Shown: piece by piece, positions 3,001-47,821 of the stretch
Layout of the letters: each line of letters opens with the position of its first letter
How positions within the stretch are numbered: position 1 is the first letter of the stretch
NCBI GenBank assembly: GCA_000708835.1
Contig: DF237015.1
Coordinates: 124,001 to 188,000, forward strand
Reading direction: 5' to 3'
Length of the DNA: 64,000 nt
DNA from: Klebsormidium nitens
Taxonomy: Eukaryota > Plantae > Klebsormidiophyceae
Program-made: the position numbers and the translations under genes
Notes under the pieces: model-generated
Told to the model about the DNA's origin: nothing
Seen by the model: only the letters and a program-made list of their open reading frames with translations
Database searches by the model: none

Positions 3001-6000
3001 TCATGCATCGCCACTTCAAAAGGCTGCCGTTGAGGGCTGTGATTCGTTGCGCAGGACAAGCAAGCAAAGGCGGAAAGTGGCGACCTACTCAGGGAGGTGC
3101 GAAAAGAAGTAAGGTGGGTTTCTCGGCTTCAATACCCCGACAATCGTGCTTGAGGAAAAAGTCTTGTTGACCGAAGCAATGCTTGCATTTCACCGTTGAA
3201 CTGCAAGACACATGGTGCTCGGCCCAATGACTCGTTCGTCGATCGCACCCAGTCAAGTTGACGTGCTTTTGGTGGCCTCTGCCGGTTGCGTCAATTGCAC
3301 GTTGGACGTTCATTGTGCCATCAGGCAAGGTTATAGATCTTAACTCCTTGCCAATGATGCTCTCTATCTAAACATTCACTGTTTCTTTGACAGTGCTCCC
3401 AAGCTGTGCGTCGGTCATTGGCCCGACACCCTCAAGGCGGACTTCCACAACCGCATCCTTGACAGCCTGCCCCCCAATTCCGCTGTCTGCTGCATCAGCG
3501 TCGTTCGACCCCCCTCTTTCTCCGGCGCGCCTTCTGACTTCCCCACAGCGGACGACGAGCGCTCGTCAGACGGCGACCCTTCCCTGCTCATAACCCGTAT
3601 GACATCCGACAAGAGCCGGAAACCCGTCTCCGTCCGGCTCCCCATTCCGGTCTGCATGTCCGAGCGCGGAGCCTCAGCGGAACCGGAAGTCCTCCGGGCG
3701 GGGCATGAGTCAGCGTACGACGAGCTGAGCGACGACGAGAGCACGGGTGACGTCAGCGTGACGGGGGAGACGACGCTGAGGTCAGCGCTGGAGGAAGTGC
3801 TGGAGTGCTTTGCGGAGATTCTGGAGGAGAGCCGGCGGTCGACCGCGGGGCAGGTGGACACGTCAGCGCAGAAGAAGCGGTGGTGGCGCTGGCGGCTGAC
3901 GCTGGACAAGAACCTGGGTGGCCTGCTCCAGTGAGTTGGACAGCGCGTTTTCTTGCTGCTTGCTTTGTCCGCGCTTCTCTTGTAAGTTTTCAAAGGGCTC
4001 TCCTACCGGGGAAAAATGCCTTCGTGGGGTGTCCAGCAATGCCTCGCGAGTGCGGAGTGCAATCCTCTGAGAGACATTTCACGTTTGGTCGTGTTTGCGT
4101 TTCAATGGCCGAAGTAACGCTCGCTTGCAGAAGAAGAGAGTCGGCCTGATTGAACGAGCTTTGCAACACTCCCTGATCTGAGCTGCGGAGTTTTCTGGAC
4201 CTTCAGATATATAAGGGGTTGTGTGAGTATTTAGCAGAAAAATTGAGAGTCACCCAGGGGACAGCTTGGGGGCGGTGATGCAACGCACCCCTTGCGCCTG
4301 CATAGCCCCCGAGCATGCATCACATAATACATTCCTCACAAAGACGACTCCCTTCTAAAGCAACCTTTACATTTACACTTCCAGCAACTGGTGTTCTGCA
4401 GAGGCCTACGGGTTGGATAGATGCGTACGCACCTTCCCCACCGTGAAAATGTCCGTGACAATCTTGCGTATCTGTGCAGGACGATGGAGGACACGTGGCT
4501 GGGCCCCTGGCGCTGCCTCCTGGTGGGCGAACCCGCAAACCCCGCCGCTTCTGCCGCGCTCGTCGCGGCCGCCCGCGACCTCAAGAAGCGCATGGACGCC
4601 GCAAAGCAGGGCCGCGCCGAGTGGGCCAACCCGACAAAATCGGGGCCCTGTGTCGACCTGGAGCTCGTCCGTTTGCTGCTTCAGGGAGCGCACTCCCTCC
4701 CAGACGGGGCCCTCGAGTCGGCCGTCGCGGAGCTCCTCGGGTGGAGCCCCGAAGTGGCGGAATCCGCAGCGGAACTGCGCGAGGAGAGCGGACGGAACCG
4801 GACGCCTCGCGGCCGCGGGGGCGCGGACGAGGCGAGCGACAGCGGCAGCGAGAACGAGAGCGGAGAGGAAGACGGGCCGGAGGGGCTGGAGCTGCGGCAG
4901 GCGAAGCTGGTGGTGCGGCTGGCGGACGAGATGCGGCGGGTGGCGATCGAGGCTGACGTCAGCGACGGGGATGGGGACGTCAGCACGGCGAAAGGGGGCA
5001 AGGGATCGCGGAAGCCGTCACGGGGGAAGAAGACGAGAGGAGACGAGGACGCGAAGGGCAGGAGCGGGGAACGGCTTCCTGTAGTGCTAGTCCTGGACTG
5101 CGATCTGCAGGTGAGGTCTAGCGTGACGGATGCTTTCACAAGACTCTGTTCTTCGGTGAGGGCTTCTCAGAAGGACCTGCATGTGCGAGCCCACCGTTGG
5201 TATTCATTTTCAAGGTCTTTTGAGCGAAAGCAGCGAGCGTTCTTGACGCTTCGATTTGTGTGCCCGGTAAGTTACGGGCCTGCAGCTGCATTTAGGAATG
5301 TTCAGCTGCTCGGTTTTCTCGCTCGGTAGTCGAATCGGCATGCGAGCGCTGCGGAGATCGGTCTCTGATAAGTCACTCAGAGGACACAAAGGCCAGAAAA
5401 TGTTTTAATCCGCTATTGCAATGGTTTCTTGACGAGTTCTCTGAACAGCCTGAATCATCTAAGCATTGGCATTAGAAATTTCTAGAGAGTTAGAACCAAT
5501 TCCAGGGTCAAAATCCTAGAACCTTAAAATCTCTACAATCTTAGAATACTCCTTCGCAGGCGCTGCCGTGGGAGAGCCTCCCCGTCCTCCGCTCCTCCCG
5601 CGTCTACCGAGCCCCCTCGGTCGCCAGCATCCGGGCACTCGTCGCCCGAAGCCGCCACCAAAGCCTCCTCGCGACGGCGACCACCGAAGAAAGAGCCCGA
5701 TTTTCCGTGGACGCTTCCAACGCCTTCTACCTGCTGAACCCAAGCGGGGACCTGGAGGCGACGCAGGCGTCCTTCGAGCAGTGGTTCAGGAGCCAGAAGG
5801 GCTGGCAGGTCAGTCTCAGAGAGGGCGTGTTGGAACGCGTAACGCCAAGCTAAAACACCAGTTTCAGCGTTTCCGCCCCTAGCACTTGGCCCTGCTTAGA
5901 GTGACCGGTGTTGGTATTGCGCAAACCGAAAGAGGGCGTCGAGAGATTAATCTTCTTAATCAAATGTTCATTAGGGCTCCGCTCTGCCGGTTGCTTGGAA

Positions 6001-20923: not shown

Positions 20924-22027
20924 ATGAATCCTTATCAAGGGCCCCTATGCAGGGGTCAAGCTGGCCAGGGGTCCTTTTCAGTTGCAGCATCAGCAGCGCC
21001 ATGGTTCCAGATGCCACCACAATTAGGGGCAGCTCCTAGTCCGTATTTCCATGCATCATCAACAAACTTCTCAAGTCTGATGCAGGAAGCTGTTCAAACA
21101 AACCCACAGACGTCACCACAACCTTGGGACATTGGCGAAGGCCCTGTGGCACAGGACCAGCAGGGGCAGCCAAATCAGCTTTCGGAGGGTGTCCAGCTCA
21201 GTGAGCCAGGCTGGCAGCAGCCTATCAGAGAAGCTTCAGAGAAAGACCTCACTCAGGAGGCTGCGGAAGAGACCCCTGTTTTGCCCCAGCAGCCGGAGAA
21301 TGGAAAGCGTGGAAGGGACAAGAAGGCAGCAGGGGGGGAACAGCCTACCAAGAAGCCAAGGGGTGGCAAGAAGAAAGCCGCCAAGGAGCTCACTGAAGAG
21401 GAGAAGGAGCAGCTTGCTGCCGGGAAGGAGGTTTACTGGCAGTTGTGTTGGGTTATATGCCTCATTGAGCAGAGAATCCGCCGTGATGCAGAGTTGAACA
21501 AGCCCAAGACTGGCTTTGATACGTGGGCCAAAATTGCAGTGGCCATTACAGCGGAGTATCCTGACTTTGACAAGGATGCTGAGGCTTGCAGGCAGAAAAT
21601 GAAGAGAGTCATGAAACAATACGAGGGAGACAAGCAGACCAACGAGAGATCGGGGTCGGGCAGGGCCAACAGCTGCCCTTTCTATGAGCAGATGGATGCC
21701 TTCTTTGGGACAAAAGCTACAGTCAATTGCGCGGCGCGCTTGTCGAGCACAGCTGAAACTCCGGGGAATGCAGCGATGGGAAGTGTAGAGGAAGGGTCCA
21801 ATGATGTAAAGGCCCAGGGCAGTGGCAAGGCTGACCGCAAGAAGAGTGCACAGGTTGATGCCATGAAGGAGGTCATGGAGGACGTGATTGAGAACACCAC
21901 CGGCAGGGTAGTAGATGCTCTTACCCAAGCTAGCTCGGGCACTCAGAAGGTCATGGAAGGAATGCGATCAGACATTAACAACTTCATGGGGCGGCTCTTG
22001 GACATTCTTGAGCGAGACGGCTTGTAG
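20924..22027 (+). CDS. Harbinger-associated Myb/SANT-like (trihelix) DNA-binding protein, 367 aa, single exon
   Basis: Intact ORF with W(AKIAVAI)...DAEACRQKMKRVMKQY...CPFYEQMDAFFG trihelix pattern, located inside the TIRs. Confidence 0.85.
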   Translation: MNPYQGPLCRGQAGQGSFSVAASAAPWFQMPPQLGAAPSPYFHASSTNFSSLMQEAVQTNPQTSPQPWDIGEGPVAQDQQGQPNQLSEGVQLSEPGWQQPIREASEKDLTQEAAEETPVLPQQPENGKRGRDKKAAGGEQPTKKPRGGKKKAAKELTEEEKEQLAAGKEVYWQLCWVICLIEQRIRRDAELNKPKTGFDTWAKIAVAITAEYPDFDKDAEACRQKMKRVMKQYEGDKQTNERSGSGRANSCPFYEQMDAFFGTKATVNCAARLSSTAETPGNAAMGSVEEGSNDVKAQGSGKADRKKSAQVDAMKEVMEDVIENTTGRVVDALTQASSGTQKVMEGMRSDINNFMGRLLDILERDGL

Positions 22028-25151: not shown

Positions 25152-25934
25152 GGCTGCATTCAAGTTCCTTTACAAAGTACTGCCAGTGATGCTCTCCTCC
25201 GTTTTCTGCCAGAGTCGAATCTGTCCTGATCTGTGCAGGAGCCCGGGAAATTTCAATTTCAAACCCTAATCTGAGCCCGCCAACTCGGCTTGGGGCGCGC
25301 GGTGCGCAAGGGCTTAGGGTTTCGGGCCCTGCCTACGTGGCTTCGCCACTTCTGTGACCGGCAACATGACCGGTGACAGTGTCACACGGTCGGTCGGTCA
25401 CCTGAACACTTTCGAGGGCTCACACGTGTGAACGCTGGTCGACCGGCGAAATTTGCAACGAGGTGACCGATGACCGATGACCGCCCGTGTGACAACCCCC
25501 TAAGGGGCTATTCGCATGCCACCGCTACCGCTACATTATCGGTACATTGTAGCGGAAAACCGAGAAATTTACCATCGCATGCACCCTTTCCGCTAAAACA
25601 GAATCTTTCGCACGCACGAAATCCCGCTACATTGTAGCGATTCCGCTACATTGTATAACCGGCCATATACATTCTACAGATTGTAGCGGGTTCCGCTAAA
25701 AGCTGCCGTGGCACATCGGACGGCCGCAATGAAACAGCGTTCCTACCCCTCCCGCGCACAAGTGCCGCCAAAACGCCAGCACACTCGCTGCTCCTGAGTC
25801 AGGCTGGCAGGTGACTCGGCTTGGCAGTGCCTGCTTGAAGTAGTCCATTTTGGGCCAGCGTCTTGCTCAGGCACACTACAAGGCACCAAGTTAAAGTGGC
25901 AAGCAAGAATCTGGGTGCAAGCGGCTGCCAGGAC

Positions 25935-28011
25935 ATGGAGTCCGCTGGCGGACGAGACCCGCATTTGTTCAGTCAGCGCGTTGTTGAGTACATCAGCCAT
26001 GAGATGGAGCCGGCTTCCTTTGTCCAAGCACATCCGCTTCGATTGGCAGCTGCCTTGGCAGCCAACGGGGATTTCTGCACGAGAGTTCTCTTTCACCAGA
26101 ACTCCAATATTCCTAACTTGGCAAACCTGCTTGCACAGCTGAAGCCCTTCTTTGCTACTCAACTTTCTTCTCAATCGCTAGAGCTCAGTCCAGAGGCGCT
26201 CTCTCAGGTCCAACTTCAAGGGCAACCTCAGGTGCCAACCACTGGTGCCCAAGCGGAAACCAATCAGGACAATGTGTCAGTCGCTTCCGAAAGCACACGG
26301 ACTCACAATCAGACCCCAGCAAGTTCCGCCGTCCCAGGGACCGCTGCAAAGAAAAGCAGAAAGAACTGGTCAGTATATGAAGGTGAAATGTTGGCTGCTC
26401 AGATGAAGATCCATGAGGATATGCTGCTTGACAAGAGCACAGGCATCAAGTATAGGACAATGAGTGCAACCGAGAAATTTGAGATGATCAGTGCTCGTTT
26501 GCGCTCGCTGGACCCTCCTGTTGACCGCACAGCCAGCCAGATTGAAGACAAGTGGGACAGAATGACGGGTGACTTCAAGAAAGTCTATGATTGGGACAAG
26601 CATCCTCCAAGTGGGAAGCCCACGTACTGGGAGATGGGGCCAGATACGAAGAAGGAGCACAATCTGCCCCCTGCATTCACAAAGGTTCTCTTTGAGAGGT
26701 GAGCAACTGGACTTCGATTGTTGTGTATTTTGACCACATTGTTGATAGATAAGATGCAATTGTTAGTTTCAATTCTTGTAGGACAGCGCAAAGGCAATCT
26801 ACCTGTGCAGTCCATCAACGCCATCTTGTGAGACTGATAAGGACAGAGTCTGTGCTTTCAGCTTGTCAGTCGTCCGCTCAAATTGCATTTTAATCTGCTT
26901 GTTCTTCAGATTGGTTTTGCAAACTTTGATACATCACCTGAACATGGGGGAAATGTCTTAGCTTGAGCTAGATTTGTTCAATACGTGCGTGCTACGAAAT
27001 TGATGTGGCCAGCTTTTGAGCTCCTGGTGGATTCACTTGGTTGAGGATGTTCAATTGCATGACAAAGACTGGCCTTATCTATTTTAATTTGTTCTGTATT
27101 TATAAGTCAAACCTCAGCAGCGATTGTTTCCTACCCAGATTGGGGTGCGCTAGTTCAGACAACTTTCAAAGAGTCTCATAGAAGCAGAAGATGGGAGTCT
27201 GGTAACTTGGATATCGCAGATCTGAAAGTGTTTGATGAGCTTGGGGTTGTAACGGGGTTGCTCTCTCTTTGTATGCAACTTCGAACCAATAGGCCGCTCT
27301 GATATGTCAGAATTGCCGATCAAAATTAACAGGCAACCCTGAATCAAGCCTTCACATCACCCCATTTTTAAGTACGGCATCTCAATTTGTCATCAGGCAT
27401 TCTGAATTCTGGAAAGCCTGCCATAGCAGATCAGATCCATTGAATCCAGGACTGCTCATATCTCGTTTCAAAGAGCTTCTCGAATTGGTTCAACACAGTG
27501 GTTGTTGACAGCTTGGCACTGTAATAAATTTCCAATCGATTGTTCTTGCAGCTTATTGTGGATGAAAGAGAGGGCGAGCGTTGAGCCGCCGGTTGTCCTG
27601 GACACCGCGGCCACACCTGAGCCGGCCACACATGGCCCGGCCACACCGGAAGGCAGCCCCGACTCCAACGATGACGACAGCGCAGTCAGAGATACGACCG
27701 CATACTCACGGAAGGATGCAAATGGGAAAGGGAATGGGAAAGGGAACAAGCGGGACAGAAACGGGGTTGTCTTGAGCGAAACCCTGAGAGCGAATAACGA
27801 GGATACCAACAAGATGCATATGGATTGTGAGAACCTGCGAGATGCTCGACACAGGGAAATGAAAGATTTGAGAGAAAGAGAGCTCAAGCTTGAAGAAGAG
27901 AAATTGAAAGTGGTGGAAAAGAGCAATGAAGTTGCGGCACAAACCGGCAAAGGCCTTGTAGAAGCTCTTCAAGGCTTGGCTAATGCTGTGAACATATTGG
28001 CCAGGAAGTAA
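25935..28011 (+). CDS. Harbinger-associated Myb/trihelix protein of element 2, two exons (25935-26698, 27552-28011)
   Basis: RKNWSVYEGEML...EKFEMISARL...RTASQIEDKWDRMTGDFKKVYDW...YWEM...LPPAF motif. A phase-2 GT-AG intron joins in frame to LLWMKERASVEPPVVLD, followed by a coiled-coil C-terminus. Confidence 0.85.
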
Positions 28012-28485: not shown

Positions 28486-29739
28486 CTATTGATCTCTCTC
28501 AAACAAGTATTCCGCAATAGCCTTTCTGATGTCATCGCTACGTTCGTAGTTACTGACCCCCGTGGGCAATCCTGGATTGCTTCCCAAAGTACCGAGTCCA
28601 AAGTGGATATCTGGACCTCTCAGCGCACGATCCATCACATCCCCTCGCTCAATTCTGAGATTGTGTAGCACACAGCATGCTAGTACATACGTTGGCAACC
28701 TGTCAATCTTTGGGTTCTGGATTTTCGTAAGGAGAAATCGTTGAACCCCCTTCAATTCTCCGTTCAATTGCTCGATGCACATGCGAGTGCTAGAGTGCTT
28801 AAAATTAAAGGACGCTTGGACAGGGTTCAAATTGTGACCTGGGAAGGGCGTCAAGAGCCACGGAAGCATAGGGTAACCGGCATCAGCTACCAGCATCTGA
28901 GGGACCTCAATACCATTTACATTGACTAATGGGCCCCCAAGGTGCCCTTGAATATCTCTAGCAACTTCGGAGTTCAACCAGACACGAGTGTCATGAACTG
29001 ATCCGGGGTAGCCCACGTTCACTTGCAATATCCGCCGTTTTTGCTGCATCCAACAAATGGATACAAATGAATCTCGTTACGAAATTGAAGTTGGTTTCAA
29101 GGAATGCAACCGGGCAGAGTATTGCTGATCCTGAATCTGTCGTGCACTTAGCGACTTCAACAAAGACAGACGAAGACATGCTATCACAATGACCATATCG
29201 TTACTTAGTTGACTAAGAAATCATGTGAATTACGATGAGCACTGAAAAACAATCAATCTCTTTTCAGGGAACAACGAAGCAGAAAGGCAGAATGCTTAGG
29301 AAGCTAGGACTGAGCAAGGTTCAGATTTGTCTCAGAGAAGAATAGAATCTGGAAGAAGCTATCTCAAAGGCAAGCTGGTTATTAAAGCAACTTACCCAGG
29401 CTTAATGAGCAGTGATGAAGTCATACAATCTGTACAAGCTAACAATGAACCATAAGGCTTTGTATGAACCACTTACGTCTCCCACCAATTGCACAACTGT
29501 GCTGTAATTGTGATCCCGGTCATAGAAGCAGGTGGCCGGATACCCGGCAGGAAGATCGTGAACTATGTGGGTGCAGTCGATTGCTCCCACACAATTGGGC
29601 AGCCCATGAACAGCCTGCATGCTTGCAATAGCTGCTACACGTTCGGCACCTTCTGCTGGCCACTTGATAGTTCGGGGTCGTTCTACCGCTACTATAGCTT
29701 GACAAACCCTCCAAAGAACGTCGCTGACCGTGCTTTCTC
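28486..29739 (-). CDS. Harbinger transposase of element 2 (exons 29477-29739+ and 28486-29043; 5' part lost in the N-gap)
   Basis: CVGAIDCTHI...YDRDHNYSTVVQLVGD|QKRRILQVNVGYPGSVHD...LVADAGYP...FNFKHSSTRMCIEQLNGELK...ACCVLHNL. The DDE triad is present and the intron is phase 0. Confidence 0.92.
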
Positions 29740-34680: not shown

Positions 34681-37600
34681 ATGGAGAGTCCACCAGAACG
34701 AGAGGAGGGAGACGCGATTACGCAGGACGATGCATGGAGTGTGGCCAGCGCCTACGTTGCAGAGAACGGCTTGGCTCGGCACCAGCTGGATTCCTTCGAG
34801 GAATTCGTCCAGTCAGCAATGCAAGAGATCGTTGACGAAGCGCCTGAGATCGAAATCCAAGAGGGGCCGCAGGAAGGTGGTCAGCAGGCAAGCCACTTGA
34901 AGGGTTCGTTGACTGGATTTTTGACCCAGGTCAGAATGGGAGAAGAATGACTTGATCAACGGATCAAGGAGAAAAAGGAGAGCAGATATCCAAAAAGAAG
35001 GAAACGGAGCTGAGATAGGGCAGAAAATAAGCGGTGGCTGTCGTGATCTTTCAGATCAGATTGAAAAACCTGGAGCTAGCTTTCCAAGTTTCCTTGAAGA
35101 CCCGTCGAAACTATTATCCAGATCTCACACGCTATCCAGCTGGAGGATCCATTTAGGCTTGGTGTCAAATCATCTTCGCTATCTTGAAGTTGAGCTAAGG
35201 CAGAACCTCGAATTGTGTTAGGCGTACCTCTGACACCTAAAAGCACATAAGTCCGAAACTCCAAAGCCCCATTCGTTGATTATACCCCCCTGCAGGTCAG
35301 CCACATAATCAAATTTGGGCAGGTCTACCTGAGCAAGCCCTCCACGAAGGAGGCCGATGGCGAAACCCTAGGCCTCTCCCCGAAGGAAGCCCGGCTACGC
35401 AACCGGACCTACGCGGGCGCGCTGTACGCGGACGCAAAGCGGACGTCCGTACGAGTGGGCTCCTCCAGAGAGGAGCCGGTGGACACGGAGATTTACGAGA
35501 AGGTTTTCCTTGGAAAGGTGCGCTGTTCATGGAATCATGCTTGATTTATCTTCGAGGTCGTCAGCTTGGCTTTTTACCAGAGATGGGCTTCTTTGCGAGG
35601 AGGGTCGAATCGCCGAGGCGCCCCATATGACGCGGGAACGGGCAGATCTTGCTTCATTACGAGCCGAGGTAGCCGTTTGGGCAGCCTGTGTTTATGTGTT
35701 CAAGAATCTCTGGAATCTTTCAGACCGGTTCAGCTAGTTCTGACTTCGATCTGCAAAGGTCGGCGCGGGCGGATCTGGACTGCCGGTATCATCTTTGATT
35801 CGATACCGTATTCTTCAGGACCATTAAACTACGTCTGCCATTGCATCTTCAACCGGTCCGAATCATGCTTAGATTGACACTAGTTCGAATAAATCCAAAC
35901 GCAAAGCCGCCTGTTCCTGCCATTCTCCAGCTGCCCATCATGGTGCGCTCCAGCTTCTGCGCGCTCTCCGGATTGTCCGACGCGCAGCGCGCGCGCGCCG
36001 GCGACTGTCCCTACGATCCGGGGGGCTACTACATCATCAACGGCGCAGAAAAGGTGCTCATTGCACAAGAGCGAATGAGCAACGGCCACGTGTACGTTTA
36101 CAAGAAGTCTCCGTATGCATACGTGGCAGAGGTGCGGTCGCAGGCGGACGGTGCGTACCGGGAAGCCAGCAGTCTGTATGTGCGGATGCTTTCGGGAAGC
36201 GCGAAAGGGGCGACTGGGAAGCCGATACGATGCAAGCTTCCCTCCATAAAGTAAGACGTCCTTTCTTTGGTGGAAACAAATCGAGAAAGATATTACTTGA
36301 CATCTTGTTCAAGGTTTTCTTCATACCTTCATGACGATCTTGACCTCCGACGAATCCTCTTCCTTGTTCGACAACCCGTGTCTCGAAAAGCCGCGGTTGG
36401 AATGCCTTCATAATATCTGTTCACGCCCGTGATTCAAGCTGACCAAAAAACTTGGACACACACTTTCAACGAAGTTTGCACTTTCGGAAAGAGCACCTTG
36501 TTCAATTCTGTCCTTCGACGGCTTCCTGGTATGAAAACCTTGGCTTACGCACAGTCCCTGATGCAGGGGTGACGTCCCCATTGTTCCGTTGTTCTTCGCT
36601 CTGGGCGTCACAGCGGAAGAGCACATCTTGGAGCGGATCTGCTACAATCTGGAGGACCGCGAGATGCTGGAGCTCCTGCGGCCGTCGCTGGAGGAGGCAG
36701 CTGACGTGTCCAGCCAAGAGGTATGTGCACGAAACCCTTTTAGACTTTGAAGTTTTTCGCGTTTGGGATCCCGTTCTGCGACTTTCTATAAACGGGGCTT
36801 TCAAAGCGATTGCACGAAAAAAATCAGATGCGGCCCTGGCAATCTGGGTTGCCGCGTCACCAGTTTCTTGATGGGCGGCGTCAATGGATTCTGTTAATCG
36901 CTCACATGTTTGTATCCACTTGCGTGGTTTAGAAATCACTTTCTCTCCTCTGATGACAGGAGCTATCGGCTACAGCCTATAGTCCTGCATCAGGTCTTTT
37001 GGGATTTGTCTTCGCCGCTCGTTCCATCGACGTCAACCCCAGGTATCTCGAACTCTCCTGAGAGATTTCTCGTGCTGACGTTTGCATCTCTCTTTCTTCA
37101 TAAAACCTCCTCCCGATGTCGTGTAACCCTCCGCGCAGGCCGCGCTCGATTACATCGGCGGCAAAGCCGCTTCTCACCTCAACGGAGACACGCCGCGCGC
37201 GCGCGCGCGCGAGCTTCTGCAGACGCACCTTCTGCCGCACGTGGGCACCGAGGACACTCAATCGTGCGCGACTAACAAGGCGTACTTCCTGGGTTACGTC
37301 ATCCACCGTCTGCTGACGTGTGCGCTGGGCCGGCGGGCAGAGGACGACAGGGAGCACTACGGGAGCAAACGGCTGTACCTGGCGGCGCCGCTGATGGGGG
37401 GGCTCTTCTGCGCGGTAAAACATCCCCCTGTTTCAGAAAAATTGCTGTTCTCTTAAGTCCGGGCTTGCTGGAAATATGGATCCGTGATGAGTTGGCCATC
37501 ACACTCTTCGTCATAAGTTGTCGTGGTTTTTGGGGTCATTTTGAAACCAATTGATGCGACGGTGCTTATTGATCTTGACTTTGCATATCTACGAATTGAA

Positions 37601-40600
37601 GTGCGTTTCAAATTCGCTGCACAGGCCGCTCAGTAGCCAAATCTTGCCCTCATTCGCCCTAGCCTGGTTTTTGCAAGATCCGACAGCCTCACTCTCAACG
37701 TCCAGGTATTGCAAGAGCAGAAGTCAGGTTGCATTGCTACCGCGCAATCATACACTTTCCTCTGTCGAATGATGGAAATCATATGACCAGTCTTCTTTGA
37801 TCATTCCGGCCGCAGCTGTTCCGCCACATGACCAACGGCGCGCGGAAGTACCTTCAGAAGCTGGTGGAAAAAGGCCAGAAGATGGACCTGACGTCAGCCG
37901 TGAACGCCAAAATCATTACACACGGGTTCAACTATTCTTTGGCGACCGGAATGTGGGGAGAGCGAGGGACCGTGGGGATGATACCAGGGGTGTCTCAGGT
38001 GCACTTCTCCTTCCTCGTATTCTACTCTCTCGTGGTCATGTTGTTACGCTGAAAGTGAACTTCGGATCAGGAATGCTTTCCGCTTGAGCCCTTTTCGAAT
38101 TTCAGCGCACCTTCCAATCACGACACTTCGTTCAGTCCCGGCTCAAACATCGCCTTTCAATCCCACGATAGTTATGTTTCCAATCTGTCCTTCCTCTCAA
38201 GCACCACCAACTGCATTCTGGATAGCCGTTAACTCCGGTTTAGCCTCACCATCGGATGAAGTCATCAACTACCCATTTGATGACGTCAGGACCTCGAACG
38301 CGACACATACGCCTGGACGATATCCCTGCTCCGCCACATCGCTTCCCCCCTCTCGGAGAAGGGCAAACTGTCCAAACCGCGCCAGCTCCACAACTCCCAC
38401 TGGGGCAGGATCTGCCCGGTGGAAACCCCCGAGGGCGCGTCTTGTGGGCTGACGAAGAGCCTGGCGCTGAGCGCGTATGTGTCGGTTGGGTCTCCCCCCG
38501 GCCCGCTGCTGGAGTTTCTAGACGAGTGGATAACCGAGAGGCCGGAGGTGGGTTTTTGATGAATTATATTGCATCTTGAGAAAAAGAGCTCATGTGCCAG
38601 TTGAAATACGAGAAATGTGAACATTTTCTTGAGATGGAAGAGGGTCAAATTTTTATCCAGCTTCAACCTTAGACGAGTGGACAACTAAGAGACTTGAGGT
38701 GGGTTGAAGACGAGTTTTTGAACAAGCGAAGTGTGGTGAAACGAAGTTTGTGCCCAGTATTCGAGATACACGGAGANNNNNNNNNNNNNNNNNNNNNNNN
38801 NNNNNNNNNNNNNNNNNNNNNNNNNNNNNNNNNNNNNNNNNNNNNNNNNNNNNNNNNNNNNNNNNNNNNNNNNNNNNNNNNNNNNNNNNNNNNNNNNNNN
38901 NNNNNNNNNNNNNNNNNNNNNNNNNNNNNNNNNNNNNNNNNNNNNNNNNNNNNNNNNNNNNNNNNNNNNNNNNNNNNNNNNNNNNNNNNNNNNNNNNNNN
39001 NNNNNNNNNNNNNNNNNNNNNNNNNNNNNNNNNNNNNNNNNNNNNNNNNNNNNNNNNNNNNNNNNNNNNNNNNNNNNNNNNNNNNNNNNNNNNNNNNNNN
39101 NNNNNNNNNNNNNNNNNNNNNNNNNNNNNNNNNNNNNNNNNNNNNNNCTTAAGATTAGCCTTGAGATGTAAGAGGGACATCATTTAAACAAGGTGCAATA
39201 TCCTGGACCTGTGTTTTTCTGCGGAAGAGGTGTGTTTTGGCGTGAGGATATCGCTGCGCCCTTGTCAAAAGGGTGTAATAATGCCTTCTGTAAGTAACGA
39301 ACAGACTTTTGAAAGGTGAAACGAGACAGGGGGTGGAGCTTGGCGGCAGTCCCCGTTTTCTCTTTGATTTCGCTTTACAGCGGATTGCTTTTAGTCTATT
39401 CTGTCGACTTTCTGAACTGTTCTAGGCTTTCTACCGAGACGACCACAAACATATTTCCAGTTGAAGCATCCCCAGTAGGAGAAGCATTTCCCGACTGTTT
39501 TGCTGGCCCTTGTCACCGCTTTTTGGAAGTTATCCCCAAGTGTTATCGCAGAGAGCCGGAAGCACATTCCGATTCACACCACCCTTTTTCCTCTTCAGAA
39601 CATTTCACCGAGCGCTCTCGCCGAATCGACCAAGATTTTTGTCAACGGCGCCTGGGTGGGCGTCCACCGGGACCCACAGCTTTTGGTGTCAACGCTGCGC
39701 CAGCTGCGGCGCCAGGTGGGCGGTAACACCGAGTTGGGCATCGTTCCGGACGTCCGCAACGGAGAGCTCAGGCTGCACACGGACGCCGGAAGGCTCTGCC
39801 GGCCGCTGTTCGTGGTGGAAAACGGGAAGCCGGTGATGAAGAAACGGGCGCGGCGAGAGGAGACCAACAACGAGGTAGGTTTAAGGAGCTAAAGGGTTAA
39901 GTTTAGCTTTTGCCGAGGTTTTTGAAAGAAGACAAGAAAATTTTGTGTCTGGCTTTTTATTAATCTGAAGTAAGACTTGGAAGCTATTTATGATACTGGG
40001 AATAGCGAAGCACAAAAGATTGATCTCAGGACTCACGGGTTCTGGATTGAAACCATCCCCAAATCAGATATTTCGTGTTTCTGAGAGGGTCAGGTACAAG
40101 ATCAACTATACGTTTCTCGACATGAAAGCACATCAAAAGAGCATGGTATATTACCGCCAGCAAAACCCTGCAATTGTGAACTATTCGTATCGTTCTTATC
40201 AGCACCTTCTTGAAAACGTTGGATTCGCCTTACCTAATCACGATCCCTCTTACCTAAACACCTTCCATCAACCCGGGACGTCTTTCGACAACCCTCGTCG
40301 GCCGTTCTACATCCCATCCCAGTACTTTCTCGTTTTCGTAGAGCAGGCCGCCCGAGGCTTCCAGGAAAGACCACAACCCTCAAATCGAAAAATCCTCTAA
40401 GATACTTATACTAAGCTCAAGTTATAACACGAACGAAGCTAACACTAAAGTCCTGAATCCAAAAGTTTACATATTCCGCACCCGTGCCCACCCTATACAT
40501 CCCCCTTGCCAACCCACCCGTCCCAGCGTTACAACCTGAGCTTACAACAATTATTCTATAGAGCGAATCAGATTGACTGCTCGAAAAGAACTCAAACCCC

Positions 40601-43600
40601 TTTTCCAACCCTCCAAACCTTGCAGGACGGCGGCCCGGTCTGCTGGCGCGCGCTGCTCGCCGCGGGCGGCATCGAATATCTGGACGCGGCGGAGGAAGAG
40701 ACGGCCATGGTCGCCATGACCCTCGCCGACCTCGCGCGCGCTCGCGCGCGCCCGCGCGACGCTCTCGCCGACGTCAGCTATGCCCACTGCGAGATCCACC
40801 CGTCGCTCATCTTCGGCGCCTGCGGTTCCGCCGTTCCGTTCCCGGACCACAACCAGCCGGTCCGGAACACGATGCAGGCCAAGATGGCGACGCAATCCTG
40901 CGGGATCCCCCTCACTAACTACCAGCTGAGGCTGGACACGACGACGCACGTGCTGTGCGACCCGCAGAAGCCGCTGGTGACGACACGTGGCGCGGGGTGT
41001 TCGCACTTTCGGGAGCTGCGCGCGGGCCAAAACGCGATCGTGGCGATTATGTGCTACTCGGGGTATAACCAGGAGGACACTGTGATTATGAATCAGGCGT
41101 TCATCGACCGGGGGCTCTTCCGGTCGCTTTACTACAGGACGATCAGGTATGGCTTGCCCGGTAAAACGGCTCGAGAAGCGCTCGTGTTTCTGCACTGCTG
41201 TTTTCTGGGGCCCGAGGCTACTCTTTAGGTTTCAGTGACGGAGGGTATAGCGTTCTATTTTTGAAGGCTCTTGAATAGTTCAGGACCCTCGTGAGGTTGT
41301 AAAACAAGGATTGTTCTGGACCAGACGAACTTCGATTTTGAAGTTCAATTATATCCAGCCAGTCCAGTTCAGGTCTCTGATTTTGCGTGGCTGTGAAGGG
41401 GAATGAGGAGTAGCAGGTTCGAGAGGCAGATGCGCCGCAGCCGTGATTCAGGTATCTCTTCTCTGAATTAATAAGATGGAGAGAGCACTTACGTCGTATC
41501 ATTTAAAGTTGTCAAAGGGGACACTTACTTGACGTTAAGCCCTTCACGCACATCATTTAAAACTCAAGAGAGATAATAGTAAGCCAAGATAATAATAAGC
41601 TCCGACTAACCCTAAAATCCTAACCCAAAAAGACACCCGCTCCGCACCCCTACCCACCCTAACCACCATACTAACTCTACCCGTCCCAGTGTGGTTACCT
41701 CACTATTATCTCGGCTTACTACTAATCTTCTTGAATTTGATACATCATCCTACAAACGACGGAGCGTCGAGGTTCATTTGTGACGTGTACCTCGTGCAGG
41801 GACGAAGAGAAGACGGTGGACGGGAAGAGAGGTCTGAAAGAGAGGATCGAGCGTCCGGACCCAACGAAGACAGCCAAAATGTATCTCGGCAGCTTCGACA
41901 AGCTGGACTCCGACGGATTGGTGGAGCCGGTAAGTGTTCGAATTCTTAATTCTTAATTCTTACTCCTCTCTTGACCGGTCAATCCCTTTGAGCACTTGTT
42001 CTGTCGTCCAACACTCCGGTCCGGCTTTCGGACTGTCCAAGTTTTGGTTTCCGCCTGAGTCGTTAGGTCTCCTGTCACGTGTTAGAAGTATTTGCGCNNN
42101 NNNNNNNNNNNNNNNNNNNNNNNNNNNNNNNNNNNNNNNNNNNNNNNNNNNNNNNNNNNNNNNNNNNNNNNNNNNNNNNNNNNNNNNNNNNNNNNNNNNN
42201 NNNNNNNNNNNNNNNNNNNNNNNNNNNNNNNNNNNNNNNNNNNNNNNNNNNNNNNNNNNNNNNNNNNNNNNNNNNNNNNNNNNNNNNNNNNNNNNNNNNN
42301 NNNNNNNNNNNNNNNNNNNNNNNNNNNNNNNNNNNNNNNNNNNNNNNNNNNNNNNNNNNNNNNNNNNNNNNNNNNNNNNNNNNNNNNNNNNNNNNNNNNN
42401 NNNNNNNNNNNNNNNNNNNNNNNNNNNNNNNNNNNNNNNNNNNNNNNNNNNNNNNNNNNNNNNNNNNNNNNNNNNNNNNNNNNNNNNNNNNNNNNNNNNN
42501 NNNNNNNNNNNNNNNNNNNNNNNNNNNNNNNNNNNNNNNNNNNNNNNNNNNNNNNNNNNNNNNNNNNNNNNNNNNNNNNNNNNNNNNNNNNNNNNNNNNN
42601 NNNNNNNNNNNNNNNNNNNNNNNNNNNNNNNNGTCCATCCTTCAAAGGGTTCTGACGCTTATCATCAACCTCTTGAACCGATTAAGAAGAGAAGTTAAGA
42701 CAACATCACCCCAAGCCGCCCATGATCGGCTTCATAAACAAAACCCTACACCTTAAGTATAAATTGAAGAACGCGTGTTCAGGGCACCCGCATCTCGAGC
42801 GGGGACGCGCCTGACGTGGTAATCGGGAAGACTGCCCCGGTGGCACCGGTTGATGAACCACCGGGCGAAGCAAGTCGGGTCAACTGCAGCACCCTCCAGA
42901 AGCAAGACGGCATCATCGATCAGGTAGGCATGAACCGGGCGAGGATCTAAGGGAACTTCCCCCTTTCATTTATCATTTTGCAGCCCCGGTCTTGACTTAG
43001 GGTTCTCTACACATAATCTCCGCCTTTGTCGATTCCAAAGCGCCAATTTTTTTAAATGCACAGATTTTTTGGCAAAGGTCTAACTCTCAAAAAAGACACG
43101 GGACCTTTCCTACGAAAACCGGAGGATATCGATTTGTTCGTAGAAGTTGAGATGTGGCTCCTCGGCAATCCTGTCTATTTGACGCCCAGGTACTCCTGAC
43201 GGAGAACGAGAGCGGGCAGAAATTGGTGAAGGTCCGCGCGCGCTCGGTGCGGGTCCCGCAGATCGGGGACAAGTTCAGCAGCCGGCACGGGCAGAAGGGC
43301 GTCGTGGGCATGACGTTACCACAGGTGGGCGGTGGCAAAGCCAGTCTCTTTTTAAGGCCGGGAGAGATTGGAATAGATTCTGCTGGGGCCAAGTAAAGAA
43401 GATCTGTGCCATCAAGATTCAGGTTCTGTATGGAAAGGAGCTCCAGCTCTTCGGAGAAAGGGACAAGAAGCTTCCGAACTGACAAACAATAAAGTCCAGT
43501 CCTGTAATCCGTACAAGACGCCTCGTAACCATCGATATCTGCCTAATGATGACATGTCGTTATGTTTGTAAGCTTGTTCGGCTGTCCCTTGTAGACGATT

Positions 43601-46341
43601 CCTCCGTAACGAACTATTGTGGAGAGCCCCTAATCCAAAGCTAAGCCGCGGCTGAAAGATTCTGATTCTTCGGATGACGTTCCCCCACCTCACATGTCAA
43701 TCATCATCTCCCATGCAGGAGGACATGCCATTCACCCGGGATGGCGTCACGCCTGATATCATCGTGAACCCGCATGCTATCCCCGGCCGCATGACGATCG
43801 GCCACCTCATCGAGTGCGCGGCCGGCAAGGCCGCCGCCTGCAAGGGGAAGGAGTGGGACGCCACGCCCTTTGCTGACGTCACGGTGAGTACACGTCGCTC
43901 ACGTCATGGTGGATCCCCCTTTGTAGACTTTCTGCTTTCCTCGCACAGGAAGAAGCTCTTTCCCTTCACAGTGTAAGCTGGTAAAGTATGGTAGTTTACT
44001 GAACGGACTGCATCCGGTGACATTCTTGGGTGCAGAGTGGGACTGCGCAGAGAATGATGGTCAGATCTTAATATGGAAAACTGTAAAAGCCTTATGTAGC
44101 CGTTCTGACTAAGATTTCATCATTCTTAAAGCTATGTAGCTGTAGGGACGCCATTGTCATTCAGAGTATCGACGCCTCACTCAGCGGGTTAAGCACTTGA
44201 GACAAGACAATTCCGAGTGAAGCTTATCAGGTAAAAGAGACTTCGACCAACATCACTTTACACATCCACGAGGTGATTGACTGGACGTTTCCAAAGCTCC
44301 CCCTCTGCACATCGTCTACGATTGGCTCCCCCACTCTTCCTCAGGTCGAAAGTTTCCCGGTCAAGAAAATGGACGAGACCGAGCTGAAGCAGCTCGGAGT
44401 CGGCGGCCGGTGCGAGATCTGCCGAAGGAAGCTAGCGGTTGGGGACGCGTGTCAGCAGATGGCACCCTGCGGCCACGTGTTCCACTCTGATTGCCTGGCG
44501 CCGCGCCTAGAGGAGGGAAACGCGTGCCCAAGTTGCCTCAACGTGGTGAGAATCGTTTCCCTGCCAAAGGTTCCAATTCAAAGCTGTCAAACACCCGGGT
44601 AGAACGGGCTTAGCTCCCATAAGGGTTAGGCTTCGTACCGGCTTTTTCCGGCCATCACTTTGAGTAGCGCCGGTCGCTCCTTCGACCGAGGTACCGTCGG
44701 ACAGCTTAAGGCGGCCTGTGTGATATCGCGACTATCCTTCTGAGATTCATAGATTAAAGCATCGGCAAAACCTGGCATACAGACAAACGTTTGCCCAGAG
44801 ATTACTCTTTGAGTCCTGTACCTGATTGCTACTGTAAGGCTCTGGCGGCAATTTTAAGCCGTTTCCATAGGCTGACGAGGGCGAAATTTCGTGTTGGTGT
44901 CAAAAAACAAAGGTGATTTATCAGAGTCATGCCACTGATCAAATAGTGCACATGAGAGTCTGCCATCAGAGCACCAGACTTCAGGCGTCCTCTAATAGAA
45001 AAGGAGACTTAGCCGTCACTCATTGGAGATCTGAAAGCCCCTTAGAATCCAAATTAGTAAGCGAAGGAATTGCGAACCCTGAACAACCAGAACTTGGGAA
45101 AATCTTGAATCTACAGGTGGACCAGGTTTCTACGGCGCTCCAAGCGTGCGGTTATCAGAACAGGGGAAATGAGGCAATGTACAACGGGAAAACGGGGCGC
45201 AAACTAGAGGCGAGGGATCTTTGTGGGGCCAATCTTTTACCAGCGGCTCAAGCACATGGTGGAGGACAAGATTTGCGGCAGAGCAAGGGGCCCGATGCAG
45301 GCAAGGGCTCTGATTCTCTGTGTTTCTTCATCTCGTATTTACTTTCCGCGAGCTTTGAAGAGGTGTCGCGTCAGTTTCGGTGCGGACCACCCTTGGAGAC
45401 CAAACTTACGCAGAAGTACGAGCCGGTGCTGCCCGGCGATTCATTTCTCGTCGTAAGATGCTACAAAAAGCCACGCCCTGTGTATCGCGATCAAGGATCT
45501 AGATTGACAAGTGAGCATCTTGTAGAGTAGCGGAACCAGTTTCGACAACGAGTTGAAATGGCGGAAGGATGTTTTCGATGAGCGGAATTAAGATTCATCG
45601 GGGGTCCCGCCATGCCTTCTGAGGATCATTTAAGCAACCTGCCAACCAGTCTGGTTGAAAGCTGCCGAATGATCATTGCCCGAAGTACTTGATTAAGAGA
45701 TCTAATCGCACGAACTGACGACCACTCTACTACCCAACGAAAGCCCCAAAAACCCACTCCTTGGGAGACAGCTAAAAGCTGACGTTCTCACCGCAGCCGC
45801 TGACGCGGCAGCCCGTGAAGGGCCGCGGCAAGGCGGGCGGGCTGCGCTTTGGGGAGATGGAGCGCGATCGCGCGATTGCGCACGGCGCCGCGCGTTTCCT
45901 GAAGGAGCGCATGATGGACCAGAGCGACGCCTGCCGCGCGCACCTCTGCGCGCGGTGCGGCCTGCTCGCGAGCGCGCGCGGGTGCCCGGGGTGTGCGACG
46001 TCGGCGGTGGTACAGGTGGGGCTCGCTACAGCTGAAACGTTCTTTGTCAGTACGGCCGCCTTGCGGTGTGTCTCAGGGCCCGAACTTACTAGATCGGAAG
46101 CCATGCCTTCCGCCTTGTATCATGACCCTTCTTCGGGGCTTCGTTATTGTGCAAGGAGGTTTTGTTGTGTACAAAGTTCGCTTCTGCAATGACGTTCACT
46201 CTCATCTTTGTGGGTCCTTTCCAGAAGTCATGGTTGACCAATGCGCTTCCTTTCCTGCTCCAGGTGGAAATACCGTATGCCTGCAAGCTTCTGTTCCAAG
46301 AGCTTATGGCGATGGGCATAGCTCCTCGGATGTACGCCTAA
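34681..46341 (+). CDS. Divergent RNA polymerase II second-largest-subunit (RPB2)-like gene. About 16 exons, an apparent +1 frameshift at ~45215, and a possible inserted RING exon.
   Basis: Collinear RPB2 motifs: [154 protein letters not shown] (not the MHGQKG of NRPD2) places it on the RPB2 side. No symbol is given because orthology is unresolved. Confidence 0.92.
44345..44545 (+). CDS. RING-H2 (C3H2C3) zinc-finger exon within an intron position of the RPB2-like gene
   Basis: CEIC-x15-CGH-x2-H-x2-C-x10-CPSC gives all 8 ligands. Acceptor ccccactcttcctcAG lies before 44345 and donor GTG|GTGAGA after 44545. The exon is 201 nt (67 codons), phase 0 at both ends. Confidence 0.8.
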
Positions 46342-47821
46342 AAGCGCCAAGATCGACGAGCGTGTGCGAGCCGTTCTTCCAAACCGACACGCAATTCTGC
46401 TTTAAACTTGGCGACCAGGCTGCCCTTCGGGAAAGCAGTGAATCAGGACGTATTGGAATGACCCAATAAGAAACTTTAACGGCAAATGTAATGATCGAGA
46501 GTTTATATCGGCTACGAACGTGGGCGAGGGATTGGATAGTTGTTGCATGATTCCTTGTGCCATGCAAGTCGTCCTTTCTGATGCGTGAAGTGATTTCGTT
46601 CTTTACGTGCGACTGTAGTACGGGAAAGCGTAAGTAAAGGCAGGTCGGAGACCAGCTGAAGTGATCACGACTTTTCTATGTGATGGGGAGCAGGACATAG
46701 AGCATCCTACGAAAGCAAGATGCTTCAACCGCACACTTGTAAGTGCACTTCGTCAAAGACGGGAACGATAAAGAGTACTCGTAGATCGTCCACCAAGTCT
46801 CCATCTATCTACAGAAGGCTGACTTCAACAGAATTCAGGAAATTCAGAAGGGCTCTGTAAAATCGATGCAATCAACTTGACAGCAGCGTCGGCTCACTTT
46901 GACGCCGCACGCATGATTCAGCATTCGAAATGAGAACAGGAAAGCTTGGTGGATGTACATATCCGTCTGTGCGCAACGTTTCGGTAGATCCATCCTGATT
47001 GATTGTTGCCATCAAGACGTTGGCACGGACTATCAAACGGCACCATATATATTGCCAAAACTCACGCTGGGCCGCCCTGATTGCTGGCAATCTCAAACAA
47101 GATACCTATTAGGACGACATTATTGAATCGATCTTTCACTGAGCGGCTTTGAGACACATTAACAAAGTCTGAATGTGATTTCCGATGGAGACATACGTGT
47201 AGCAGCAGCGCGCAGCAATGCAAGCGGACTACGGATATGTGAGGTTCAAGTTGAAGCGCGATCGTGCTTTATCGCAAGCGCGGGCATAATTGGTGGAGCC
47301 CATCAGATGAAGACCAGCTGCCAGCCCGAGCGATGTCCACTGGACGCACATATGCCCACGGTTGCATGTTCGGGCGCCCCGCTCGTGTGTGCGGCGTGCG
47401 CATGTACGGGAAGCTAAGCNNNNNNNNNNNNNNNNNNNNTTGCATAAACACGTAGGTATTCGGACGGTCCGCACTGGTGTCGCGCCAAAAATCTTCGAAA
47501 TTCTGAGTCCAGCTTGTGAACCAGCCTCAAAATCAGAGTCCTGAAAGCGTACGTTCATGGCTACCTTGGGCTACCTATGGTATTTTCCAATTCGCTTGTA
47601 GCGGTAGAGGAGGCGCTGAAGCTTGGAAGCGGGGCGCTGTTGAGCACTGAAGGATAGGGAGCCATACTGCTAAAGATCACCTGGTTGCTTCGGAGGTACA
47701 GGACTCAAAACTGCGATTCGGCGACAGGAAAAACGTTAGTTGGATCAAACAGTCGTGGCGTGGCATTTGTTGTAGCTTCATCCTCTAGGAAGTGAGAGGT
47801 AGGATTTCTCTGTCCGGTGCA

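Follow-up and report, generated by a model that had tools for sequence, protein, structure and literature searches.

A frameshifted, diverged NRPB2 paralogue in Klebsormidium nitens and its possible relation to the second subunits found in RNA polymerases IV and V

We analysed a 64,000-nucleotide stretch of the genome of the streptophyte alga Klebsormidium nitens (assembly GCA_000708835.1, contig DF237015.1, positions 124,001 to 188,000 of the forward strand; hereafter the window), in which an earlier note, made from the sequence alone, had recognised a highly diverged relative of RPB2, the second-largest subunit of RNA polymerase (Pol) II. Three-frame translation of the window gave colinear RPB2-like pieces across 34681–46341, which were resolved into a plus-strand RPB2-type gene of 16 exons with a joined product of ~1170 residues (Table 1). 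The start codon at 34681 and the stop codon at 46339–46341 agree with the extent that had been proposed. Exon-by-exon searches with Pfam profiles (hmmscan) matched every domain from Rpb2_1 to Rpb2_7 in canonical order, which places the gene in the RPB2/RNA polymerase beta-subunit superfamily. The frame is not uninterrupted, as it would be in a typical member of that superfamily, but is shifted once, by +1 at 45216.

Splice sites were set by hand, and a spliced protein-to-DNA aligner was then run with an unrelated RPB2 (P0152) as guide. The aligner recovered the hand-placed exons 3–16 exactly, and the sole disagreement was the exon 1/2 junction, where the hand model (donor 34930, phase 0) and the aligner solution (34880/35266, phase 1) are both in frame; the hand-model donor is the exact site of a plant NRPB2 intron. 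Introns are GT-AG, except for intron 14, which is GC-AG, and no stop codon lies within the frame. Introns 7 and 10 each contain an assembly gap. At both, the flanking exons are in frame and colinear with plant NRPB2, the end of exon 10 (DSDGLVEP) joining the start of exon 11 (GTRISSGD) colinearly with the plant sequence DDDGLAPPGTRVSGEDVIIGKT, and therefore no coding sequence was lost to the gaps.

The gene is not the conserved Pol II copy of this genome, as it is 59% identical to plant NRPB2 and has many conserved residues replaced. The check for a separate canonical RPB2 in the same genome was positive. A 4080-nt contig from DNA run X1 is 89% identical over exon 12, has the same intron borders on both sides of that exon, and continues as GQKG-TVGMTYSQ followed by the intron start gtaag. 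In addition, run X7, for which the RNA label is a guess, contains transcripts of canonical NRPB2 (depth 125) and of an NRPA2-like gene (depth 100), and K. nitens NRPB2 is listed in a published survey (PMC7994812), where the candidate entry appears to be GAQ78641.1.

Intron positions and phylogenetic trees link the diverged gene to NRPB2 of the green lineage. We compared its introns with those of a land-plant NRPB2 assembled from locus L005, which was reached through a word match of the exon-13 open reading frame (ORF). Eleven of the 15 introns occupy the same column and phase in both genes, and one further intron lies within 2 residues of a land-plant site, in a gapped stretch. Intron 12 is common to the alga's own NRPB2 and absent from the land-plant NRPB2 examined, and two introns are private to the diverged gene. 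For alignment, trees and the ratio of nonsynonymous to synonymous substitution rates (dN/dS), the joined 16-exon product was read past base 45216. The gene groups with L004, a Logan contig from another alga (SRR23617307) that carries exons 3–12 of the same gene (support 100), and the pair is sister to plant NRPB2 (Shimodaira–Hasegawa (SH)-like support 95 in FastTree; SH-like approximate likelihood-ratio test (SH-aLRT) 94 in IQ-TREE), with a stem of 0.47 versus 0.17. By introns, trees and coexistence, the gene arose through NRPB2 duplication and persists alongside NRPB2, as NRPD/E2 genes do. It is a DNA-level duplicate of green-lineage NRPB2, a paralogue and not the only RPB2. The earlier proposal that this is a second, Pol II-derived subunit is thus borne out, since canonical NRPB2 coexists and the derived states of the duplicate are conserved in L004.

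The motifs described as retained in the earlier note, namely GYNQED, both lysines and a shortened four-Cys C-terminal zinc ribbon, are all present in the translated exons. So are the changed motifs that it named, with canonical forms checked against the land-plant NRPB2 from L005. Translation of exons 9 and 12 shows the acidic residues of metal B (ED in GYNQED) as well as the GDKFxSRHGQKG lysines. The zinc ribbon is spaced C-x2-C-x9-C-x2-C, compared with C-x2-C-x15-C-x2-C in plant NRPB2. Using yeast Rpb2 numbering checked against Protein Data Bank (PDB) coordinates, we found the hybrid-binding region (Rpb2 753–778) to carry the replacements A753G, S764P, P765V, Y769M, K775T and M778C, all of which except S764P are identical in L004. 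S1019G is also replaced, and the fork motif is rewritten. Where the gene has its G, 91 of the 91 database fragments matched by exon 13 read NPHAIPSRMT, a count that is weak evidence because the word index probably selected fragments via that motif.

Comparison with L004, to which we were led by the one useful match (P0238) of a word search with exon 9, suggests that these unusual residues are under constraint. Exons of the two genes align at 77–92% nucleotide identity, whereas introns do not align, and amino acid identity is 84% over 721 aligned codons. Over these codons dN/dS, which the earlier note had proposed to compute, was 0.17–0.27 and not near 1. A relative-rate count gave equal rates in both lineages (39 versus 36 lineage-specific changes, p = 0.73). 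The motif DLKRDTYAWTVSLLRH is nearly identical in L004, and another motif of 14 residues is fully identical. All 30 of the gene's 30 splice sites are intact, and ~1170 codons run without a stop. The odd residues kept in L004, together with low dN/dS and balanced rates, imply that the changes were fixed and maintained rather than produced by decay. The alternatives "specialised or decaying" can accordingly be separated: specialisation is favoured, and decay is disfavoured by dN/dS of ~0.2, equal rates, intact splice sites and lack of stops, save for the one real frameshift. These comparisons indicate that the gene encodes a specialised subunit that has been maintained, and that it is not an old pseudogene; they also place the relaxation of the hybrid-binding motif before at least two Klebsormidium-like species diverged. 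We also observed an additional phase-0 intron in L004 (4802–5215), which follows RNTMQ and splits the counterpart of exon 9. It is not at a plant NRPB2 intron site, the nearest being 7 residues away, and therefore reflects intron gain or loss within the paralogue.

An intact reading frame was not confirmed, and the earlier note had overlooked the shift. At 45216 in exon 14 (context GCG AGG G ATC), GRKLEAR is read in one frame and its continuation in the next, and KHMV and everything downstream are out of frame. Pfam Rpb2_6 is matched at positions 302–332 in one frame and 334–358 in the next, and the aligner likewise called a single frameshift there. The extra base is present in a 2665-nt contig of DNA run X1 that spans 43274–45938 with 0 gaps, and in a contig of bisulfite run X5 that spans 45142–45243 with 0 gaps. 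The X1 contig is an independent reading, because at three intron sites it departs from the window sequence. The frameshift is real and not an assembly slip. The encoded protein would lack the C-terminal ~135 residues, which comprise the end of the hybrid-binding domain, the anchor and the clamp. The exons downstream still encode GEMERD, the Cys4 motif and the C-terminal helix, with no indel relative to a close relative (run X6; exon 15). Inactivation is at most very recent, and the copy in the sequenced strain would be either freshly inactivated or expressed in some way not seen in these data.

We considered ways in which the frame might be restored. A frame-restoring intron of 36–64 nt inside exon 14 was rejected, as it would excise conserved coding sequence and have poor splice sites. 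The frameshift site GCG-AGG-G resembles the +1 frameshift heptamers of the yeast elements Ty3 (GCG-AGU-U) and Ty1 (CUU-AGG-C), and reading GCG and then GGG (45208–45219) gives KLEA-G-IFVGP, equal in length to canonical LTA-M-IFLGP. The likeness to Ty sites is probably a coincidence. As an observation on the same exon, six of the six listed cytosines at 45175–45204 read T in the single X5 bisulfite contig, a contig in which that strand is free of cytosine methylation.

Second subunits of the NRPD/E2 type have recently been reported from streptophyte algae. Chakraborty et al. 2024 (PMC11194755) describe NRPD/E2-like subunits in Entransia fimbriata (Klebsormidiales), Chara braunii, Mesotaenium kramstae and Penium margaritaceum, and for K. 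nitens they describe CLSY/DRD1 and a largest subunit that is NRPD1/E1-like; the text of that paper does not mention K. nitens among the species with the second subunit. Two surveys (PMC4476159, PMC7994812) both searched the Klebsormidium genome without recovering an NRPD2 from K. nitens, and a Pol IV/V-type second subunit was not found in streptophyte algae by these two or by PMC10533338. The gene in the window has conserved metal B and a diverged hybrid-binding region, the combination by which such subunits are recognised (PMC11194755 Fig. 5, PMC2605557). Haag et al. 2009 (PMC2605557, Table S2) list 38 positions at which Arabidopsis NRPD2 is altered; at these, the gene has the canonical residue at 26, another residue at 8 and the NRPD2 residue at 4. 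Five of the 12 changes at NRPD2-altered, otherwise invariant positions fall in 753–778, where N762 and Q763 are kept. Enrichment of the gene's changes at such positions was weak and varied with the threshold applied (p = 0.28, 0.019 and 0.13), and no weight is placed on it.

On balance, we favour the interpretation that the gene is the K. nitens counterpart of the charophyte NRPD/E2-like subunit, which would make its product the second-largest subunit of a Pol II-derived polymerase that is specialised and non-essential; the gene is most likely a new example, from K. nitens, of the kind of subunit described in 2024. The duplicate retains Rpb2 domains 1–7, the metal-B site, the two lysines at the RNA 3' end and a zinc ribbon. 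Replacements are fixed in the hybrid-binding motif (Rpb2 753–778), the fork and S1019, and purifying selection has conserved them in the related alga. Its product would pair with the published NRPD1/NRPE1-like largest subunit of K. nitens. The pair would make up a Pol V-like enzyme, still capable of RNA synthesis but with a different handling of the template–RNA hybrid, and this enzyme would serve small-RNA-guided silencing.

Several observations weigh against an NRPD/E2-like identity. Apart from the frameshift itself, none of the 18 runs guessed to be RNA contains words of 42640–46400, and X7, in which NRPB2 and NRPA2 transcripts reach depths of at least 100, has no contig of the diverged gene; this RNA negative is weak, because contigs drop rare transcripts. 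The trees are composed without land-plant or charophyte NRPD/E2 sequences, and the pairing with the largest subunit is one that we purely infer. The four NRPD2 replacements shared among the 38 positions are all conservative, and two of them do not occur in L004. R983 (in RHGQKG), M1021, N767 and M773 are kept, and solved RPB2 outscores Arabidopsis/Brassica NRPD2 about 1.4–4 times in every exon tested (HMMER). Arabidopsis NRPD2-specific states, such as R983M, M1021Q and N767V, are thus absent, but such states are those of angiosperms, and members elsewhere in the family need not have them. The earlier note was correct that the gene lacks the MHGQKG change, from which it had suggested possible independence from NRPD2. 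An early-branching NRPD/E2 member would look alike, and therefore this lack does not show independence. The same features could also reflect a duplication of NRPB2 that is confined to Klebsormidiophyceae and separate from the one behind land-plant NRPD/E2, giving a specialised second subunit with convergent relaxation of the hybrid-binding region, which we regard as possible though rather unlikely. Such an origin would fit the absence of R983M and of most Arabidopsis NRPD2 replacements, the far greater nearness of all tested exons to RPB2 than to NRPD2, the sharing of intron 12 with the alga's NRPB2 and not with the land-plant NRPB2 examined, and the lack of a K. nitens NRPD2 in PMC4476159 and PMC7994812. 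However, an early-branching, slower-evolving member of NRPD/E2 would show these features too, and the intron-12 pattern fits intron loss in land plants equally well. Moreover, the Entransia second subunit is placed with NRPD/E2 in PMC11194755, and the NRPD1/E1-like partner in K. nitens needs a second subunit.

A dead pseudogene, in the sense of a decaying, functionless NRPB2 copy, would account for the real +1 frameshift in exon 14, the lack of RNA contigs in the 18 guessed-RNA runs and X7, and surroundings rich in transposable elements and gaps. We consider it improbable, given dN/dS of 0.17–0.27 with no rate acceleration in the lineage, the intact splice sites and stop-free codons, and the downstream motifs that are still encoded without indels relative to a close relative. 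The possibility that this is the organism's only RPB2, a fast-evolving orthologue, would have only the RPB2-like domain set in its favour, and it is ruled out for practical purposes by the canonical NRPB2 gene and transcript in runs from the same organism and by the NRPB2 listed in PMC7994812. We give next to no credence to acquisition of an RPB2 from a giant virus and its integration in the algal genome. This was raised by P0004, one of the better database matches, whose contig is compact and virus-like, with RNase H and DUF5754 genes next to it; however, 12 or 13 of the 15 intron positions are common to green-lineage NRPB2, and the trees group the gene with plant NRPB2 and not with P0004.

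The favoured identification as an NRPD/E2-like subunit can be set against known systems. The charophyte NRPD/E2-like subunits (PMC11194755) and the K. nitens gene are both extra NRPB2-derived second subunits in a streptophyte alga, with metal B kept and the hybrid-binding region diverged, in lineages where a largest subunit of NRPD1/E1-like type and a remodeler, CLSY/DRD1, also occur. The K. nitens gene differs in being full length, frameshifted and provided with an in-frame intronic RING-H2 cassette, and the two are likened by description and not by sequence. With land-plant NRPD2/NRPE2 (solved structures 7eu0_B and 8hil_B) it has in common the NRPB2 origin, G(Y/F)NQED and the replacement of catalytic-centre invariants, especially within Rpb2 753–778, but it reads RHGQKG and not MHGQKG. 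With canonical NRPB2/RPB2 it shares the seven Rpb2 domains, 11–13 intron positions and the best PDB match for every exon tested, whereas ~41% of its residues differ, although NRPB2 is highly conserved across plants, and its zinc ribbon is 6–7 residues shorter.

If the identification is correct, K. nitens, a model alga whose genome serves as a reference for early streptophytes, would gain the pair of large subunits for what may be an ancestral silencing polymerase, the second from a full-length, intron-resolved gene. The gene would represent an intermediate stage, in which the hybrid-binding motif is rewritten while the active site is otherwise still Pol II-like, R983 included. At the same time, the frameshift warns that the sequenced strain is perhaps a poor experimental system for a Pol IV/V-type silencing pathway.

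A 201-nt unit encoding a RING-H2 domain, within an ORF at 44201–44599, lies in intron 13, which at 1233 nt is longer than any other intron of the gene. The unit is bounded by a strong acceptor (cccactcttcctcag followed by G) and a strong donor (GTG followed by gtgaga), and its phase matches that of exons 13 and 14, which join colinearly with RPB2 when it is omitted. A word search with the RING ORF returned no database relative. From its sequence, the unit could be a candidate cassette exon or a small nested gene (ATG at 44369). Were it a cassette, the second subunit of a silencing polymerase would carry an E3-ligase-type zinc module at about yeast Rpb2 position 1050. We see only a slim chance that the RING-H2 cassette is spliced into mRNA, or that the frameshift site is read through by +1 ribosomal frameshifting rather than being a lesion.

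Table 1. Positions of the exons of the diverged RPB2-type gene and of other features in the window, with the evidence for each.
Feature	Position	Strand	Evidence and remarks
Exon 1	34681–34929	+	Pfam Rpb2_1 positions 1–41; ATG 34681; alternative donor gives 34681–34879
Exon 2	35296–35517	+	Pfam Rpb2_1 positions 41–108; alternative acceptor 35267; intron position common to plant NRPB2
Exon 3, protrusion/lobe	35931–36250	+	PDB: RPB2 91 bits vs NRPD2 42; 77% amino acid identity to L004
Exon 4	36567–36720	+	Pfam Rpb2_2
Exon 5, holds KRLYLAAPL	37139–37414	+	Pfam Rpb2_2; PDB: RPB2 82 bits vs NRPD2 17–19
Exon 6	37816–37998	+	Spliced alignment; 77% identity to L004
Exon 7, fork	38290–38547	+	Pfam Rpb2_3; PDB: RPB2 105 bits vs NRPD2 40
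Assembly gap	38777–39147		Within intron 7 (38548–39598)
Exon 8	39599–39874	+	Pfam Rpb2_4 7e-23
Exon 9, Rpb2 domain 5 and start of domain 6, metal-B GYNQED	40626–41146	+	Pfam and spliced alignment
Exon 10	41800–41929	+	Preceding phase-2 intron common to plant NRPB2
Assembly gap	42098–42632		Within intron 10 (41930–42782)
Exon 11	42783–42923	+	Hand model, spliced alignment, L004 alignment
Exon 12	43190–43324	+	Pfam Rpb2_6; both intron borders same as in the alga's canonical NRPB2
Exon 13	43719–43883	+	Pfam Rpb2_6
Candidate RING-H2 cassette exon, intron 13	44345–44545	+	Pfam zf-RING_2 2.8e-10; 201 nt, phase 0/0
Exon 14, +1 frameshift 45216	45117–45300	+	Pfam Rpb2_6, aligner; GC donor 45301
Exon 15, shortened Cys4 zinc ribbon	45797–46015	+	Pfam Rpb2_7; PDB: RPB2 78 bits vs NRPD2 55
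Exon 16 and stop codon	46264–46341	+	Pfam Rpb2_7 positions 60–85
Three upstream ORFs with Myb_DNA-bind_4 (two) or DDE_Tnp_4 (one)	20924–22024, 25863–26699, 28489–29049	+, +, -	Domain match

The neighbourhood of the gene is rich in transposons. Upstream of it, among several gaps, lie two ORFs with Myb/SANT-like domains and one with a PIF/Harbinger-type transposase domain. Within the gene, the last ~35 nt of exon 7 and its donor (tagacgagtggataaccgagaggccggag followed by gtgggtt; 38518–38553) recur in slightly diverged form at 38670–38710, ~150 nt downstream in intron 7 and just before the gap. Local duplication of this exon–intron junction may be the cause of the intron 7 gap.

Among database representatives, exon 9 had no match closer than 64% identity; the word search with the exon-13 ORF gave canonical RPB2 fragments only; the best match in a metagenome scan with exon 15 was 70% identical, with no orthologue; and the protein atlas gave generic Rpb2 clusters only. 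For an ORF adjacent to the gene, an exact look-up had no entry. One match that carries MHGQKG, P0123, was considered as an NRPD2 and rejected, being a divergent RPB2 of protist type. The searches also brought up a 1484-residue intronless RPB2 (gene at 1193–5647) whose compact contig, also bearing RNase H and DUF5754 genes, is giant-virus-like in appearance (L001–L003; Logan SRR31366779, SRR31366777 and SRR31366767). This RPB2 has an insertion of ~300 residues between the GDKF...HGQKG region and EDMPF, which is possibly an intein.

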